DNA of 64,000 nucleotides, taken from positions 322,102 through 386,101 of the forward strand of contig NW_004797808.1 of NCBI RefSeq assembly GCF_000002075.1. The letters run 5' to 3'. The translations under genes were made by a program, and so were the position numbers. Source of the DNA: Aplysia californica. Taxonomy: Eukaryota. The notes beneath the pieces were generated by a model. That model had not been told where the DNA came from and ran no database searches. It saw only the letters and a list, made by a program, of their open reading frames with translations. Shown here in pieces: positions 23,701 through 29,700 of this stretch; within the stretch, counting starts at the first letter, position 1; each line of letters begins with the position of its first letter.

Positions 23701-26700
23701 TTTCATTGGTGTGTGTATATTTGTTTGGTTATAGAGAAAACTCTCCTTGTGTCTTAAAGAAACTGAAGAATGGTCCAAAAACTTAACCTTCAGTTTTCTC
23801 AAAACATTTTTTGGGATATACCACTTGTGCTTAAGATCGACCAATTAATCCCTTCAATGCCGCAGGTAAATAGGCCCCTGTGCCGCAGGAAATCCCATGA
23901 ACCAAGGCTGCTCAGGGTGACACCCCTCTTAACCTCCCATAACTTTTTTATTTATGAATATTTTTCATGAATTTCTGCATATACATTCTACATTTAACCA
24001 CATTTCTTTTGATATACTTTTGTAGGGAATTGTAACATGATGCCCAAAACACCACCAAATAACATAAACAACACATTCGAGTAATGATAAACTGGGGCCA
24101 AAAAAGGGGAAATGCATGTTGTTTGAGTGTTTGCAGGTAAAGAGGAAGTGACGCTTTTCCTACCTTATACAACACTCGTACAATCCATATATATATACAC
24201 ACACACATGTAAGCCCATCTGGGTTTATGACATATGGCGAGCAAAGAGTGGTTAATCTTGATGGCCTATCACAGTGCATAGTGGCATGAAACATGCCATT
24301 TTCACTTATTATCCTATCGTGAGTCTCAAGATCAACGCTTATCCAGTTGCCCCTCCCCTTTACCTGTCGGAAATTTATAACTTTCCATTTCTGACCGAGG
24401 TCCGCTCCAGCCTTTGTCGTTACACACCATTACTTTGTGATTAAAATTCAGTCTGTCTTGCAAATTTGGGAGTAGAGACAACTGCTGCAATGGTCATTTC
24501 GATGTGATCCCGCCTGGAGCGAACATGTAGGCCCTACCCACCCAGCGTGTGATGTAAGTTTAGGTTGAGAGCTCAGGTGTGAGTGGGATGCGTGGGGAAA
24601 ACAAACCTGTCTGTCAGTTCACACCCCGGTGCTATCTCGTCTGGGGCAAACATTGTATCGCTTCATCGATTTTTACGATTGTGATCACATTTACTATAGT
24701 GGCTGAGCTTTGACGCGACGGACGGTGGGGAGAAAGTTTCTAGTAAAGCTGATGTTTTTGCAAATCAAAGAATATTAAGTTGTACAGCTTTGAGCAATTG
24801 GAAGACCAATTGGTAGGGATAATAACTATATTATAGGCATTGTCTACTGGTTTAAATTCTAAAAGACTTGATTGCATGATTGACCTACTTTTGGTATTAC
24901 TATAAATGGTAACATAGGAAGTGTAGGGCTTTTTTCTTTGAGTTATCTGGTAAGAAATCTCTGAGACCTAGAGTCACTACTGAATCTATCCACTGATACA
25001 TTAGTGCTAAGCGTCTCAGACATTGAATCGTCAGTCCTATGCGCCAATTCATCTTAATAATAGATGGGTTGGTCACCTTTCGTACTGGCACATATTCATC
25101 TTATGCAAGTGAATTGTGAGGTGAAATTTGTCGTACCACAATTAAAGCTTTAGATCTAGCTGCATTGCAGTAAGGAAGTTGTCAGGGGACTGTACCCTAG
25201 CGTTGCTTAGATTTACTCGTGGACTTTGCAGTACTCCCGTGTTCCGCACTAGGGGACTGCAAAGAAACAACCTTTGAACTTTGTGTCGTGGTCAACAAGC
25301 CATCATCAACATTTACATCCCATAGTAGTAATTCTGGTTCTATGTTACGTCGACACCTTTTTGAGCGAAACTTTAAATATTTTTTTTCCCTGACATATGA
25401 AAAAACGGCTTGGGTTTGGGGTAAAAATATGAGAAAATTAGTAAAGGTAGCTGTTGGGGTTGGCAAGTCTGTGCTAGGCCTAAGTAGGTGGTCTTGTTGT
25501 TGTTGCTGCCGATCAGAGAATTATAATAGATGGCTAACCCTTTGACTGGTTGGTAATATTAGTCTTTCCAGTGTAATGTGTTTTAAACTGAACACTGAAG
25601 ATTTGAAAATTGAGAATTTTGGCCTGAGTATATCATGTGTATCGGTATCGGTAAATGTATTCAAGGGTACTACTTAAAGTAGAATCCTGGATTCTTCAAA
25701 TCAAAAAGTATTTTTCAAATCTTTGAAAACAGTATTGAAAAGGATTGATGTTATTTTTATAGACTAAAATCTAAAAATGTCATCTCGATTGGAATCAGCC
25801 TTTTCCTGTTCAGAGCGTTTTGTCATAAAACATTAGTAACAGTGAGAAAAAAGTCAATAATGCTTGGATTAGGGTGTGATGTGCTAAGAGGATGCACATT
25901 CAAGATTTATTACAACAAACATCTCAAACTGTCTTAACAGTCCCCCTGTGCGGAATGCTAGGGGACTGCACAGACGCCGAGTAGATCTAAGCAGCGCTAG
26001 TCCCCTTACAACTTCCTTGCATTAATTTGTGCTTCATTTATAATTGTGCTGGTTTTTGCACAGTCTGAAAATTGCTCAAAGCTTATATAACTGAACATTC
26101 TTTGATATTTTTTTTTTTAGGGGGGGGGGGATCAGCTTTCTAGTTTGAGCAATTTAAGACCAGTTAGTAGGGATGATAACTATATTAAAGACATTAAACC
26201 TACTGGTTATTGTTCCAAATGAATAAAAATTCTCACACTTATTTAGACTTAATAGCATGGTAGACCTACTTTTGGTATTACTATAAATGGAAACCTAGGA
26301 AGTAAACTTTTTTTGATGTGATAGTTTTCTGATAAGAAACCACTGAGACCTAGAGTCACTACTGAATCTATCCATTGATACATTAGTGCTAAGCGTCTCA
26401 AACATTGAATCGTCAGTCCTATGCGCCAATTCATCTTAATAATAGATGGGTTGGTCACCTTTCGTACTGGCACATAATCATCTTAAGCTAGTGAATTTCG
26501 AAGTGGAATTTGTCATACCACTAGTAATGCTTTAGATCTTGCAGCATTGCATTAATTAGTGCTTCATTAATAATTGTGCAGGTTTTAGCAGTCTGAAAAT
26601 TGCTCAAACCTGGACTACTGAACATTCTTTGATTCACAAAAAAAAATCAGCTATACTGATTTGCACAAAAAACCCTTGCTAGAAAGCTTTTTTTTTTTTT

Positions 26701-29700
26701 TTTTGCAAATCAAAGAATGTTCTGCTGTACAGGTTTGAGCAATTGAAGACCAAATGATAAGGATGATAACTATATTAAAAGCATTACCTACAGGTTAACA
26801 TTCCAAATGAATTCAAATTCTCACATTTATTTTGGTATAACTATAAATTGGAAACATGTGAAGTGAACATTTTTTTCTTTGTCAGTTTTCTAATAAAAAA
26901 TCTCTGAGACCTAGAGTCACTACTGAATCTATCTATTGATACATTAGTGCTAAGCGTCTCAAACATATCGAATCGTCAGTCCTATGTGCCAATTCATCTT
27001 AATAATAGATGGGTTGGTCACCTTTCATGCTGGCACAAATTCATCTTATGCAATTGAATTTTGAGGTGAAATTTGTTGTACCACATGTAAAGCTTTAGAT
27101 CTTACTGCATTGCATTAATTAGTGCTTCATTTATAATTGTGCTTGTTTTTGCAGATTCTGAAGATTGCTTAAACCTGTACAACTGAACATTCTTGGATTT
27201 GCATAAAAATCTGATTTATTGATTTGCAAAAAAAATCAGCTTTACGGTAAAGTTTTTTTTTTGTTAATCAAAGAATGTTTGGTTGTACAGGTTTGGCTTT
27301 ACGGGAAAGTTTTTTTTTTTGGTTAATCAAAGAATGTTTGGTTGTACAGGTTTGAGCAATGTAAGACCAATTGGTAGTGGTGATGACAATATTAAAGGCA
27401 TTTAACCAATTGGTTAATTTTCCAAATGAATTTAAATTCTCACATTTATTTTGGCATTACTATAAATCTAAACATGAAATAAACATTTTTTTCTTTGACA
27501 GTTTTCTGATCAAAAGATAAAGATCTCTGAGACCTAGAGTCACTACTGAATCTATCCTTTGATACATTAGTGCTAAGCGTCTCAAACATCAAATCGTCAG
27601 TCCTATGCGCCAATTCATCTAAATAATAGATGGGTTGGTCACCTTTCATACTGGCACATTATCATCTTCTGCAAGTAAATTTCAAGGTGAAATTTATGTT
27701 ACCACAAGTAATGCTTTAGATCTTGTGGCATTGCATTAATTAGTGCTTTATTTATAATTGTGCTGTTTTTTGCAGATTCTGAAGATTGCTTAAACCTGTA
27801 CAACTGAACATTCTTGGATTTGCATCAAAATCTGATTGATTTGCAAAAAAATCAGCTCTATGAGAAAGTCTTTTTTTGTTAATCAAAGAATGTCCGGTTG
27901 TACAGGTTTGAGCAATGTAAGACCAATTGGTAGTGGTGATGACAATATTAAAGGCATTTAACCGATTGGTTAATGTTCCAAATGAATTCAAATTCTCACA
28001 TTTATTTTGGTATGACTATAAATTGGAAACATGTGAAGTAAACATTTTTCTCTTTGACAGTTTTCTAATAAAAAATCTCTGAGACCTAGAGTCACTACTG
28101 AATCTATCTATTGATACATTAGTGCTAAGCGTCTCAAACATCGAATCGTCAGTCCTATGCGCCAATTCATCTTAATAATAGATGGGTTGGTCACCTTTCA
28201 CACTGGCACATATTCATCTTATGCAATTGAATTTTGAGGTGAAATTTGTCGTACCACATGTAAAGCTTTAGATCTTTCTGCATTGCATTAAGTGCTTCAT
28301 TTATAATTGTGCTTGTTTTTGCAGAGTCTGAAAAGGAGTCGGAGTCTTCGGAGGAAGAAGCTGAAGCTCCAAGTGATACGGAGCCAAAAGAGGATGGAAA
28401 CGATGAGCAAAAGATGGATGAGAAACAGGAAGACATGGGGTTGGAGTTCCTTGTCAAGAAAGAAAATGCGCAGCCTAAGGTAAGTTGAGCTTGACCTTAA
28501 TTTTTTTTTTTCTTTTTCTGATTGATTGATTTGTTGTTTTCATGAATTGCTATTGAGGATGATATTTTGATTTTTTTAAATTTATGGATTGCCCAGTTTG
28601 GAAATTTTTGCCCTGAGAATTTTGTGTACTAAATACATAGCTGTGTTGGTTACCATCAAATTACAAGGTAGGATTGGGTACAGTTGTTCCTTTTTCATAC
28701 CTTTTCTTAGCAATGTTCTACTTTGTCTCTGACCAATTTACGTTCTTTCTTTTTCTAGGGTGATGAGTCCAGTACAGAAGGGCCTGGAAAGGAGTTCAAT
28801 GATATTGCAGCTGCTGCCCAGAGCTTACAGCCGAAAGGATATACTCTGGAGACCACTGAGGTAGTGACACTGAATATATTTGAGGAGTCCACAGAAAAAA
28901 CATGCATAGTCTCAGACTGAAAATCGTGAGGGTATCAATTTTTAACACTTGTTGACTCATAACTGTATTTCTGTTCAGCTCTTGATTGATTATTGTTGTT
29001 AGATTTTCCCATCAAACAAATATGAAGTTATAAGTCCACAAGCTCTTAAAATCCTGGCACCCTCACATTTTCCAGTTTTTGACTAAGCCTGTTTTTTTTC
29101 AGTGGACTCATTTGTTAATTCTCACTTTCTGAGCTTTTGGTATTTTGACCTCAAGGTTAAATGGAGACCTTCTTTAGCGTAACTTTTTTTGTGTGTGTGA
29201 ACTGCTGCACTTTGGTTTTGAGTATGATATAACACAAGGTGTCTTGTTTTCAGCATATAACCTGCACTTTTTAGAAAGCTGCCTTGAAATACTTGTTAAA
29301 CTTTCGTTAGTGGGTTTTAGAATCTGATGGCATCTTTTGAAAAAAAAATTATGCATTTTGACTCTGCTGTTCATGTTTTCAGTTATCTTTTGCCCATGAG
29401 ACCTTCATAGTTATTTGTTTTCGCTGTTGCTGTATGTTTTTTTGTTTTTGTTATTATGGATGTACGGGTTATGTCATTATACTCATTGTTTTTGTTTTCA
29501 TCAATAGGTGAAGACCAAAGTGCCTTTCCTGTTGAAGCATACACTAAGAGAGTACCAGCACGTTGGCTTGGACTGGCTTGCCACAATGCATGATAAAAGA
29601 CTCAATGGGATCCTTGCTGATGAAATGGGTCTCGGCAAGACCATCCAGACCATTGCCATGTTGGCTCATCTTGCATGTGACAAAGGTTTGCCAAATTTTA

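Follow-up and report, generated by a model that had tools for sequence, protein, structure and literature searches.

The closest described systems to the RNA genes in this study are the vertebrate box H/ACA small nucleolar RNA (snoRNA) SNORA3 and the nematode RNA ceN100. SNORA3B is assigned to pseudouridines Psi3899 and Psi3938 of 28S ribosomal RNA (rRNA) in a review (PMC12931454). SNORA3A is embedded in RPL27A in human, and across vertebrates it is always found in ribosomal-protein genes, not always the same one, as reported in a 2026 study (PMC13736004). Tandem isoforms of one H/ACA guide within a single intron have been described in Drosophila and rice (PMC2780460; Huang et al. 2004, referenced in PMC5932544). 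Herein, five tandem copies of a predicted dual-guide box H/ACA snoRNA gene are described in a window of 64,000 nucleotides (nt) from the mollusc Aplysia californica (NCBI RefSeq assembly GCF_000002075.1, contig NW_004797808.1, positions 322,102 to 386,101 of the forward strand; positions below are counted from the first letter of the window). The five copies lie in one intron of a SRCAP/domino-type gene, and a diverged sister array lies in an intron of RPL34. A sequence-only reading of this DNA had proposed an ortholog of SNORA3 (ACA3) in a different host. Its statement that human ACA3 guides Psi3899 and Psi3938 and sits in RPL27A agrees with the published sites, given for SNORA3B, and with the published host, given for SNORA3A.

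Five tandem H/ACA copies and their predicted 28S targets

Five direct repeats were found in the window, each with a core of ~137 nt, and the cores are near-identical when aligned (Table 1). The genome search found exactly five copies on contig NW_004797808.1, with 96-100% identity. The repeat unit is ~550-620 nt, and unit 1 is 1,355-1,382 nt owing to an insertion of ~0.84 kb. Poly(A) RNA reads join position 23558 to position 28325 (16 reads in total from three runs, 8 + 3 + 5). This indicates that all copies are located in one spliced intron, on its sense strand, as the sequence-only reading had placed them.

The units were then compared by whole-unit alignment. Within the RNA, the copies had a mean pairwise difference of 0.050; the values for the 150 columns on the upstream and downstream sides were 0.226 and 0.121, respectively. 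The earlier description of almost invariant cores with drifting spacers is verified by these values, with 5% divergence in the RNA versus 12-23% in the spacers. In the RNA, 15 of 137 columns vary, versus 82 of 226 flanking columns (Fisher p = 5e-8). These 15 columns belong to the leader, the apical loop of each hairpin, the hinge, the linker that is unpaired in pocket 2, and the 3 letters after the ACA, plus one guide position. The guide position varies in copy 3 only, where a C to U change still allows a G-U wobble with the target. The four pocket strands that had been listed, CTAGAGTC / GCTAAGCG and CCTATGC / CACCT, were found in every copy, except that copy 3 reads CCTATGT. All stems and all guide-target pairs are kept despite the differences among the five copies. 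Such a pattern would be expected for several copies that are each selected for RNA structure.

Each copy displays the hairpin-hinge-hairpin-ACA layout of the H/ACA class, with an internal pocket in both hairpins. A two-hairpin fold of -39.6 kcal/mol was obtained for copy 5 (z = -4.2), and no fold as stable was seen among 200 shuffled sequences. In the consensus fold, built from ten copies (five from the window and five from the sister array described below), hairpin 1 is composed of a 6-base-pair (bp) lower stem, the pocket, and an upper stem, followed by a hinge starting with ACAU. Hairpin 2 is composed of a 6-bp lower stem, the pocket, and a 9-12-bp upper stem, with an ACA immediately 3' of the stem. 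The ACA adjoins the 3' lower stem in all ten copies of the two arrays. Counted on the alignment, the distance from the start of the guide strand to the hinge box is 14 nt in hairpin 1, and that to the ACA is 16 nt in hairpin 2; the usual guide-to-box distance in H/ACA RNAs is 14-16 nt. Pocket 1 is partly self-closed in the energy-minimised fold. Partial self-closing of H/ACA pockets is usual in minimised folds and has no bearing on function.

The targets were predicted by scanning 1,505 uridines within the 28S, 18S, and 5.8S/internal transcribed spacer stretch of the same genome. Two-sided pairing was scored for each pocket with the U-N dinucleotide left unpaired, and the 28S positions were numbered from the start of the Rfam large-subunit rRNA match. 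The top site of pocket 1 (strands CUAGAGUC / GCUAAGCG) was 28S U2747 within UGUUGAGC-UU-GACUCUAG, with a score of 26 and a runner-up of 15. The top site of pocket 2 (strands CCUAUGC / CACCUU) was 28S U2786 within UGGGUG-UA-GCAUAGG, with a score of 21 and a runner-up of 10. Four 28S copies fetched from the genome all read GTTGAGC-TT-GACTCTAG and GGGTG-TA-GCATAGG. The 28S letters forecast by the sequence-only reading (GGTGTAGCATAGG) are thus present, including the predicted GCATAGG variant. U2747 and U2786 are separated by 39 nt, the same numerical gap as between human Psi3899 and Psi3938. Judged by this spacing and by the conserved flanking letters, the two uridines correspond to Psi3899 and Psi3938.

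A change of pocket 2 in step with the rRNA is suggested, since its strand is CCUAUGC here versus CuUGAUUc in the SNORA3 consensus, and the 28S of this genome reads GCATAGG. The human 28S presumably reads GAAUAAG at the pocket 2 site. If this is right, the letters are consistent with a guide and a target that differ together between the vertebrate and mollusc lineages. The earlier claim that pocket 2 tracks a GCAUAGG variant holds for the variant itself and for the differing guide strand, and the tracking is consistent with both. Taken together, the five copies are very probably box H/ACA dual-guide snoRNA genes, with two 28S pseudouridines as their predicted products.

A sister array in RPL34 and the relation to SNORA3 and ceN100

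A diverged paralogue array was found by the genome search on another contig (C88, minus strand of locus L016, 4200-8783). Five or more tandem copies are visible, with lower stems starting at ~8781, 6135, 5492, 4843, and 4338 of the locus. The array lies between two RPL34 exons in an intron of ~5.3 kb. The upstream exon matches Pfam L34e with 35.4 bits, and the downstream exon was recognised from its translation only. The count covers the visible sequence, outside a run of N at 7205-7985 (781 nt) in the same intron that possibly hides further copies. Compared with the copies in the SRCAP/domino-type gene (domino copies), the RPL34 copies show 82-87% identity in hairpin 1 and much greater divergence in hairpin 2. 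Four base pairs of hairpin 2 are changed on both sides between the two arrays with the pairing kept in the ten-copy consensus fold. Both pockets are kept in the five visible RPL34 copies, and U2786 is again the top site, with a score of 18-25. The RPL34 hinge boxes are canonical (ACAUGA or ACAUAA), with five of five fitting ANANNA.

Further paralogues were sought with the first-pocket pattern, which gave 50 matches compared with 76 for the reversed control; the matches outside both arrays are chance-like. Twin matches on contig C533 were rejected because they have no lower stem. Only two loci in the 927-Mb assembly carry the guide, and both are on the sense strand of an intron. The tandem repetition, the palindromic spacers, and the transposon-like insertion in one unit could also be expected from a satellite or mobile-element repeat with an H/ACA likeness that arose by chance. 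Such a reading is extremely improbable: a count of two intronic loci does not suit it, the top rRNA matches of both pockets are adjacent known modification sites, the stem changes are compensatory, and pattern matches elsewhere in the genome do not exceed the control in number, with no lower stem in the two that were inspected.

The best Rfam match of the copies is nematode ceN100 (RF01607), at 27.0-36.6 bits versus a gathering score of 80, with model positions 1-132 aligned end to end. Nine copies were scanned, and the scores were 27.0-36.6 bits for the five domino copies and 31.7-36.6 for four RPL34 copies. The E-values were ~1e-4 to 2e-4 in the local search; when the whole window was searched, four of the five domino copies had values of 0.003-0.03. 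The conserved blocks of ceN100 coincide with the four guide strands (AGAGUCAC, GUGCUA, UAUGC, and CACCU) and with the ACA. In the SNORA3 consensus line, CuAGaGUCaC and GuGCuAgaGc are found in the 5' hairpin and CuUGAUUc in the 3' hairpin. The first-pocket motif, including the odd A opposite G, is common to SNORA3, ceN100, and the Aplysia RNA, and it is located in the same hairpin. When the SNORA3 model was searched over the whole genome, a single 25-bit match on another contig was found, and it was rejected because the guide motifs are absent. Literature searches on ceN100 targets and for mollusc snoRNA catalogues found nothing relevant.

Several observations weigh against the assignment of the five copies. 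The domino hinge boxes are ACAUUG, ACAUUG, ACAUAU, ACAUCA, and ACAUCG, and ANANNA is fitted in copy 4 only. Read depth over the copies is essentially nil in the three poly(A) libraries, which is expected for such libraries. The two pockets had been said to complement two nearby 28S sites; both sites are indeed top-scoring, but the complementarity of the pocket 1 3' strand is incomplete, with 7 of 8 positions paired (two of them G-U) and an internal A-G mismatch at the fourth position. No Rfam family reached its gathering score over the whole window. The similarity to ceN100 is significant in the local search only, and the whole-genome ceN100 search, which found nothing at E <= 10, is uninformative, with 42 of ~52,500 candidates scored. 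The Rfam SNORA3 model (RF00334, gathering score 51 bits) gave no match in either array even at E <= 10. The sequence-only reading had staked its proposal on a hit of this model, and on this point it failed.

The hinge box is the main reason for retaining another interpretation. The RPL34 array alone might yield a working guide, and the domino copies might be a duplicated offshoot that forms no stable particle and whose copies are alike via gene conversion or youth. ANANNA is broken at the sixth position in four of the five domino copies, which have G or U there, and it is kept in all RPL34 copies. The 3' strand of pocket 2 pairs at 6 positions in the RPL34 copies versus 5 in the domino copies, and the poly(A) libraries hold no RNA evidence for the latter. 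However, all five domino hinges still start with a perfect ACA, and degenerate boxes are frequent in Drosophila snoRNAs (PMC5932544). The spacers have diverged by 12-23% while the domino stems, guides, and ACA are untouched, a contrast not easily explained unless each copy is under selection. Gene conversion restricted exactly to 137 nt would be less simple. The offshoot interpretation is therefore considered improbable, and the domino copies are regarded as probable guide genes in the following.

The functional equivalence of the Aplysia RNA with SNORA3 is well supported by the guide strands and the predicted site pair. Since the SNORA3 family model gives no match, we infer orthology from the guide motifs and the architecture. 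Common descent with SNORA3 and ceN100 is likely rather than demonstrated. The resemblance to SNORA3 might instead be convergent, with an unrelated H/ACA RNA that acquired the neighbouring targets independently and is an analogue, not an orthologue. Little similarity to the SNORA3 consensus is found outside the guide strands, the model fails in both arrays, and the guide strands are constrained by conserved rRNA, so any guide for the same site would look alike. Such an origin is nevertheless rather unlikely, with a chance that is small but appreciable. The same site pair is joined in one RNA, in the same hairpin order and with the same non-obligatory A-G mismatch, in SNORA3, ceN100, and the Aplysia RNA, and the sister array is located in a ribosomal-protein gene, the host class of SNORA3A across vertebrates (PMC13736004). 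The label of SNORA3 ortholog thus agrees with the two targets, the guide motifs, and the architecture, but not with the family model.

Host gene and spacers of the window array

The host gene was identified from its downstream exons, in which an SNF2 domain is present. The exon at 31894-32154 matches human SRCAP with E = 1.9e-48, INO80 with 1.6e-25, and p400 with 2.4e-12. Because the downstream helicase exons match SRCAP far better than INO80 or p400, the gene is assigned as SRCAP/domino-type. A ribosomal-protein host, as for SNORA3, is thus not found for the window array, whose host is a helicase of this type. The earlier claim of a different host is correct for this array, but the RPL34 sister array has a ribosomal-protein host as in vertebrates.

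Table 1 Positions of the exons, the intron, the H/ACA copies, and the spacer elements in the window.
Feature	Position	Strand	Details	Basis
Upstream coding exon of the host	23441..23558	+	SRCAP/domino-type; 3' part, acidic stretch	Open reading frame, RNA depth, junction
Host intron	23559..28324	+	GT..AG, 4,766 nt, all five copies inside	Poly(A) RNA junction reads; splice-site letters
H/ACA copy 1	24959..25095	+	Lower stem through ACA + 3 nt; 96% identity with copy 5	ceN100 full-length alignment 24959-25092; unit alignments
Insertion in unit 1	25173..26011 (approximate ends)	.	~0.84 kb; terminal inverted repeats (GGGGACTG... arms); splits unit 1 between RNA and acceptor copy	
Acceptor-region copy, unit 1	26017..26069	+	AG 26062-26063; with first ~10 exon letters	Repeat family, unit alignment
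H/ACA copy 2	26341..26477	+		ceN100 alignment, repeat alignments, genome search
Acceptor-region copies, other units	26545-26597, 27108-27160, 27729-27781	+	AG 26590-26591, 27153-27154, 27774-27775	
Spacer palindrome	26598..26744	.	49-nt arms, 88% complementary	Weak microRNA-like hairpin matches
H/ACA copy 3	26902..27040	+	Hinge with 2-nt insertion; pocket 2 = CCUAUGU	Alignments
Equivalent spacer palindromes	27164-27360; 27785-27916	.	Arms 46-49 nt, 83-88% complementary across the set	
H/ACA copy 4	27525..27661	+	Sole copy with ANANNA-fitting hinge box (ACAUCA)	Alignments
H/ACA copy 5	28077..28213	+	Real 3' splice site 111 nt downstream	ceN100 alignment, fold
Downstream coding exon of the host	28325..28480	+	Acidic stretch	Sequence, open reading frame, junction

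Each repeat unit carries one copy of the acceptor region, comprising the branch, polypyrimidine, and AG region of the intron together with the first ~10 exon letters. The acceptor copies diverge by 9-15% versus 17-37% upstream of the RNA. None of the duplicated acceptors was used among the 16 junction reads of the three poly(A) libraries. Long palindromes are also present in the spacers, and a palindrome right arm stands alone upstream of copy 1, at ~24758-24808. The lone right arm points to an initial duplication that had an inverted junction, with unequal exchange afterwards. The DNA read depth over the palindromes is ordinary, so they do not represent a mobile element of high copy number. 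After positions 25173-26011 are removed, unit 1 can be aligned to the other units.

The RPL34 spacers contain no comparable hairpin between the snoRNA copies, and only weak 20-nt AT-rich inverted repeats were found there. As the acceptors are unused in the reads and the RPL34 spacers have no comparable hairpin, the acceptor copies and palindromes are treated as by-products of duplication. It is quite improbable that the array units serve as processing modules, in which the acceptor copies and hairpins would be stepwise splice acceptors or double-strand cleavage sites that release five particles. If true, such modules would be a way round the rule of one snoRNA per intron; to our knowledge, no such route has been described in animals.

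Other observations were made on the RNA reads and on the host gene. A few + strand poly(A) reads at 26486-26662 are unexplained. Two segments in the 5' part of the host intron, 23654-23830 and 24185-24715, reach a depth of up to ~3e5, compared with ~45 nearby, with many loose-ended RNA reads on both strands. These segments are high-copy repeats or abundantly expressed elements. Other introns of the host gene also hold tandem arrays, at 15225-16541 (three copies of ~197 nt) and at 39426-42466 (seven copies of ~191 nt). In ten small sequencing runs, which may be small-RNA data, 9-19% of the sampled words of the stretch were present; the share of the stretch taken up by the five copies is 19%. 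In two of these runs, which are assigned to a second organism, 9-14% of the sampled words were present; the RNA cores could be conserved in a relative.

Proposed mechanism and comparison with known systems

The following model of expression, processing, and modification is built on the observed copies, fold, conservation pattern, rRNA matches, intron, and paralogues. All five genes of the tandem array, copies of the same box H/ACA snoRNA, would be transcribed within the single SRCAP/domino-type intron. The RNAs would be released after splicing, probably by exonucleolytic trimming around the assembled dyskerin particle. The pocket of the 5' hairpin would then pair with either side of 28S U2747, and the pocket of the 3' hairpin with either side of U2786. 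Each flanked uridine would thereby be presented for conversion to pseudouridine. The RNA would thus be the functional counterpart of vertebrate SNORA3/SNORA45 and nematode ceN100, and these RNAs probably descend from a common bilaterian ancestor. The second pocket would have changed in step with the rRNA of this lineage, and the sister array in the RPL34 intron is predicted to encode the same guide.

The array is genuine, but it is an ordinary representative of a class that is well known, and the current understanding of this class is unchallenged. The analysis adds the sister array in RPL34, the co-variation of guide and target, and the lack of a match to the family model. A lophotrochozoan representative is added to a guide known from vertebrates (SNORA3) and, by similarity, from nematodes (ceN100). 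Two neighbouring 28S pseudouridines may thus have been coupled in one RNA since early bilaterians. The second pocket would provide a clean example of a pocket that changes with its rRNA target, with GCAUAGG here versus the CuUGAUUc strand of the vertebrate consensus. The same guide has been amplified to at least ten copies in two hosts whose expression logic differs greatly: one encodes a ribosomal protein, the other a chromatin remodeller. These arrays may be useful for the annotation of mollusc snoRNAs and for the study of host-gene swapping.

Compared with vertebrate SNORA3A/SNORA3B (ACA3, SNORA45), the Aplysia RNA is likewise an intron-encoded, dual-guide box H/ACA RNA of ~130 nt. The predicted site pair is equivalent to Psi3899/Psi3938, the first-pocket strands are near-identical, and both are in the 5' hairpin. 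The ribosomal-protein host is shared by the RPL34 sister array only. Unlike SNORA3, the Aplysia guide has at least five tandem copies per intron, and its hosts are a SRCAP/domino-type gene and RPL34, not RPL27A. The family model is not matched, the stems and the second hairpin are unrelated in sequence, pocket 2 reads CCUAUGC versus CuUGAUUc, and four of the five domino copies have a hinge box that departs from the consensus. Caenorhabditis elegans ceN100 is the best Rfam match of both arrays and is aligned over its full length, but the scores are 27-37 bits versus the gathering score of 80. As in the Drosophila and rice arrays, several tandem H/ACA copies are present per intron, which departs from the one-per-intron rule of vertebrates. 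In contrast to those arrays, the Aplysia array belongs to another phylum, each of its units carries an acceptor-region copy and a long palindrome, and the guide has been amplified in two unrelated hosts.

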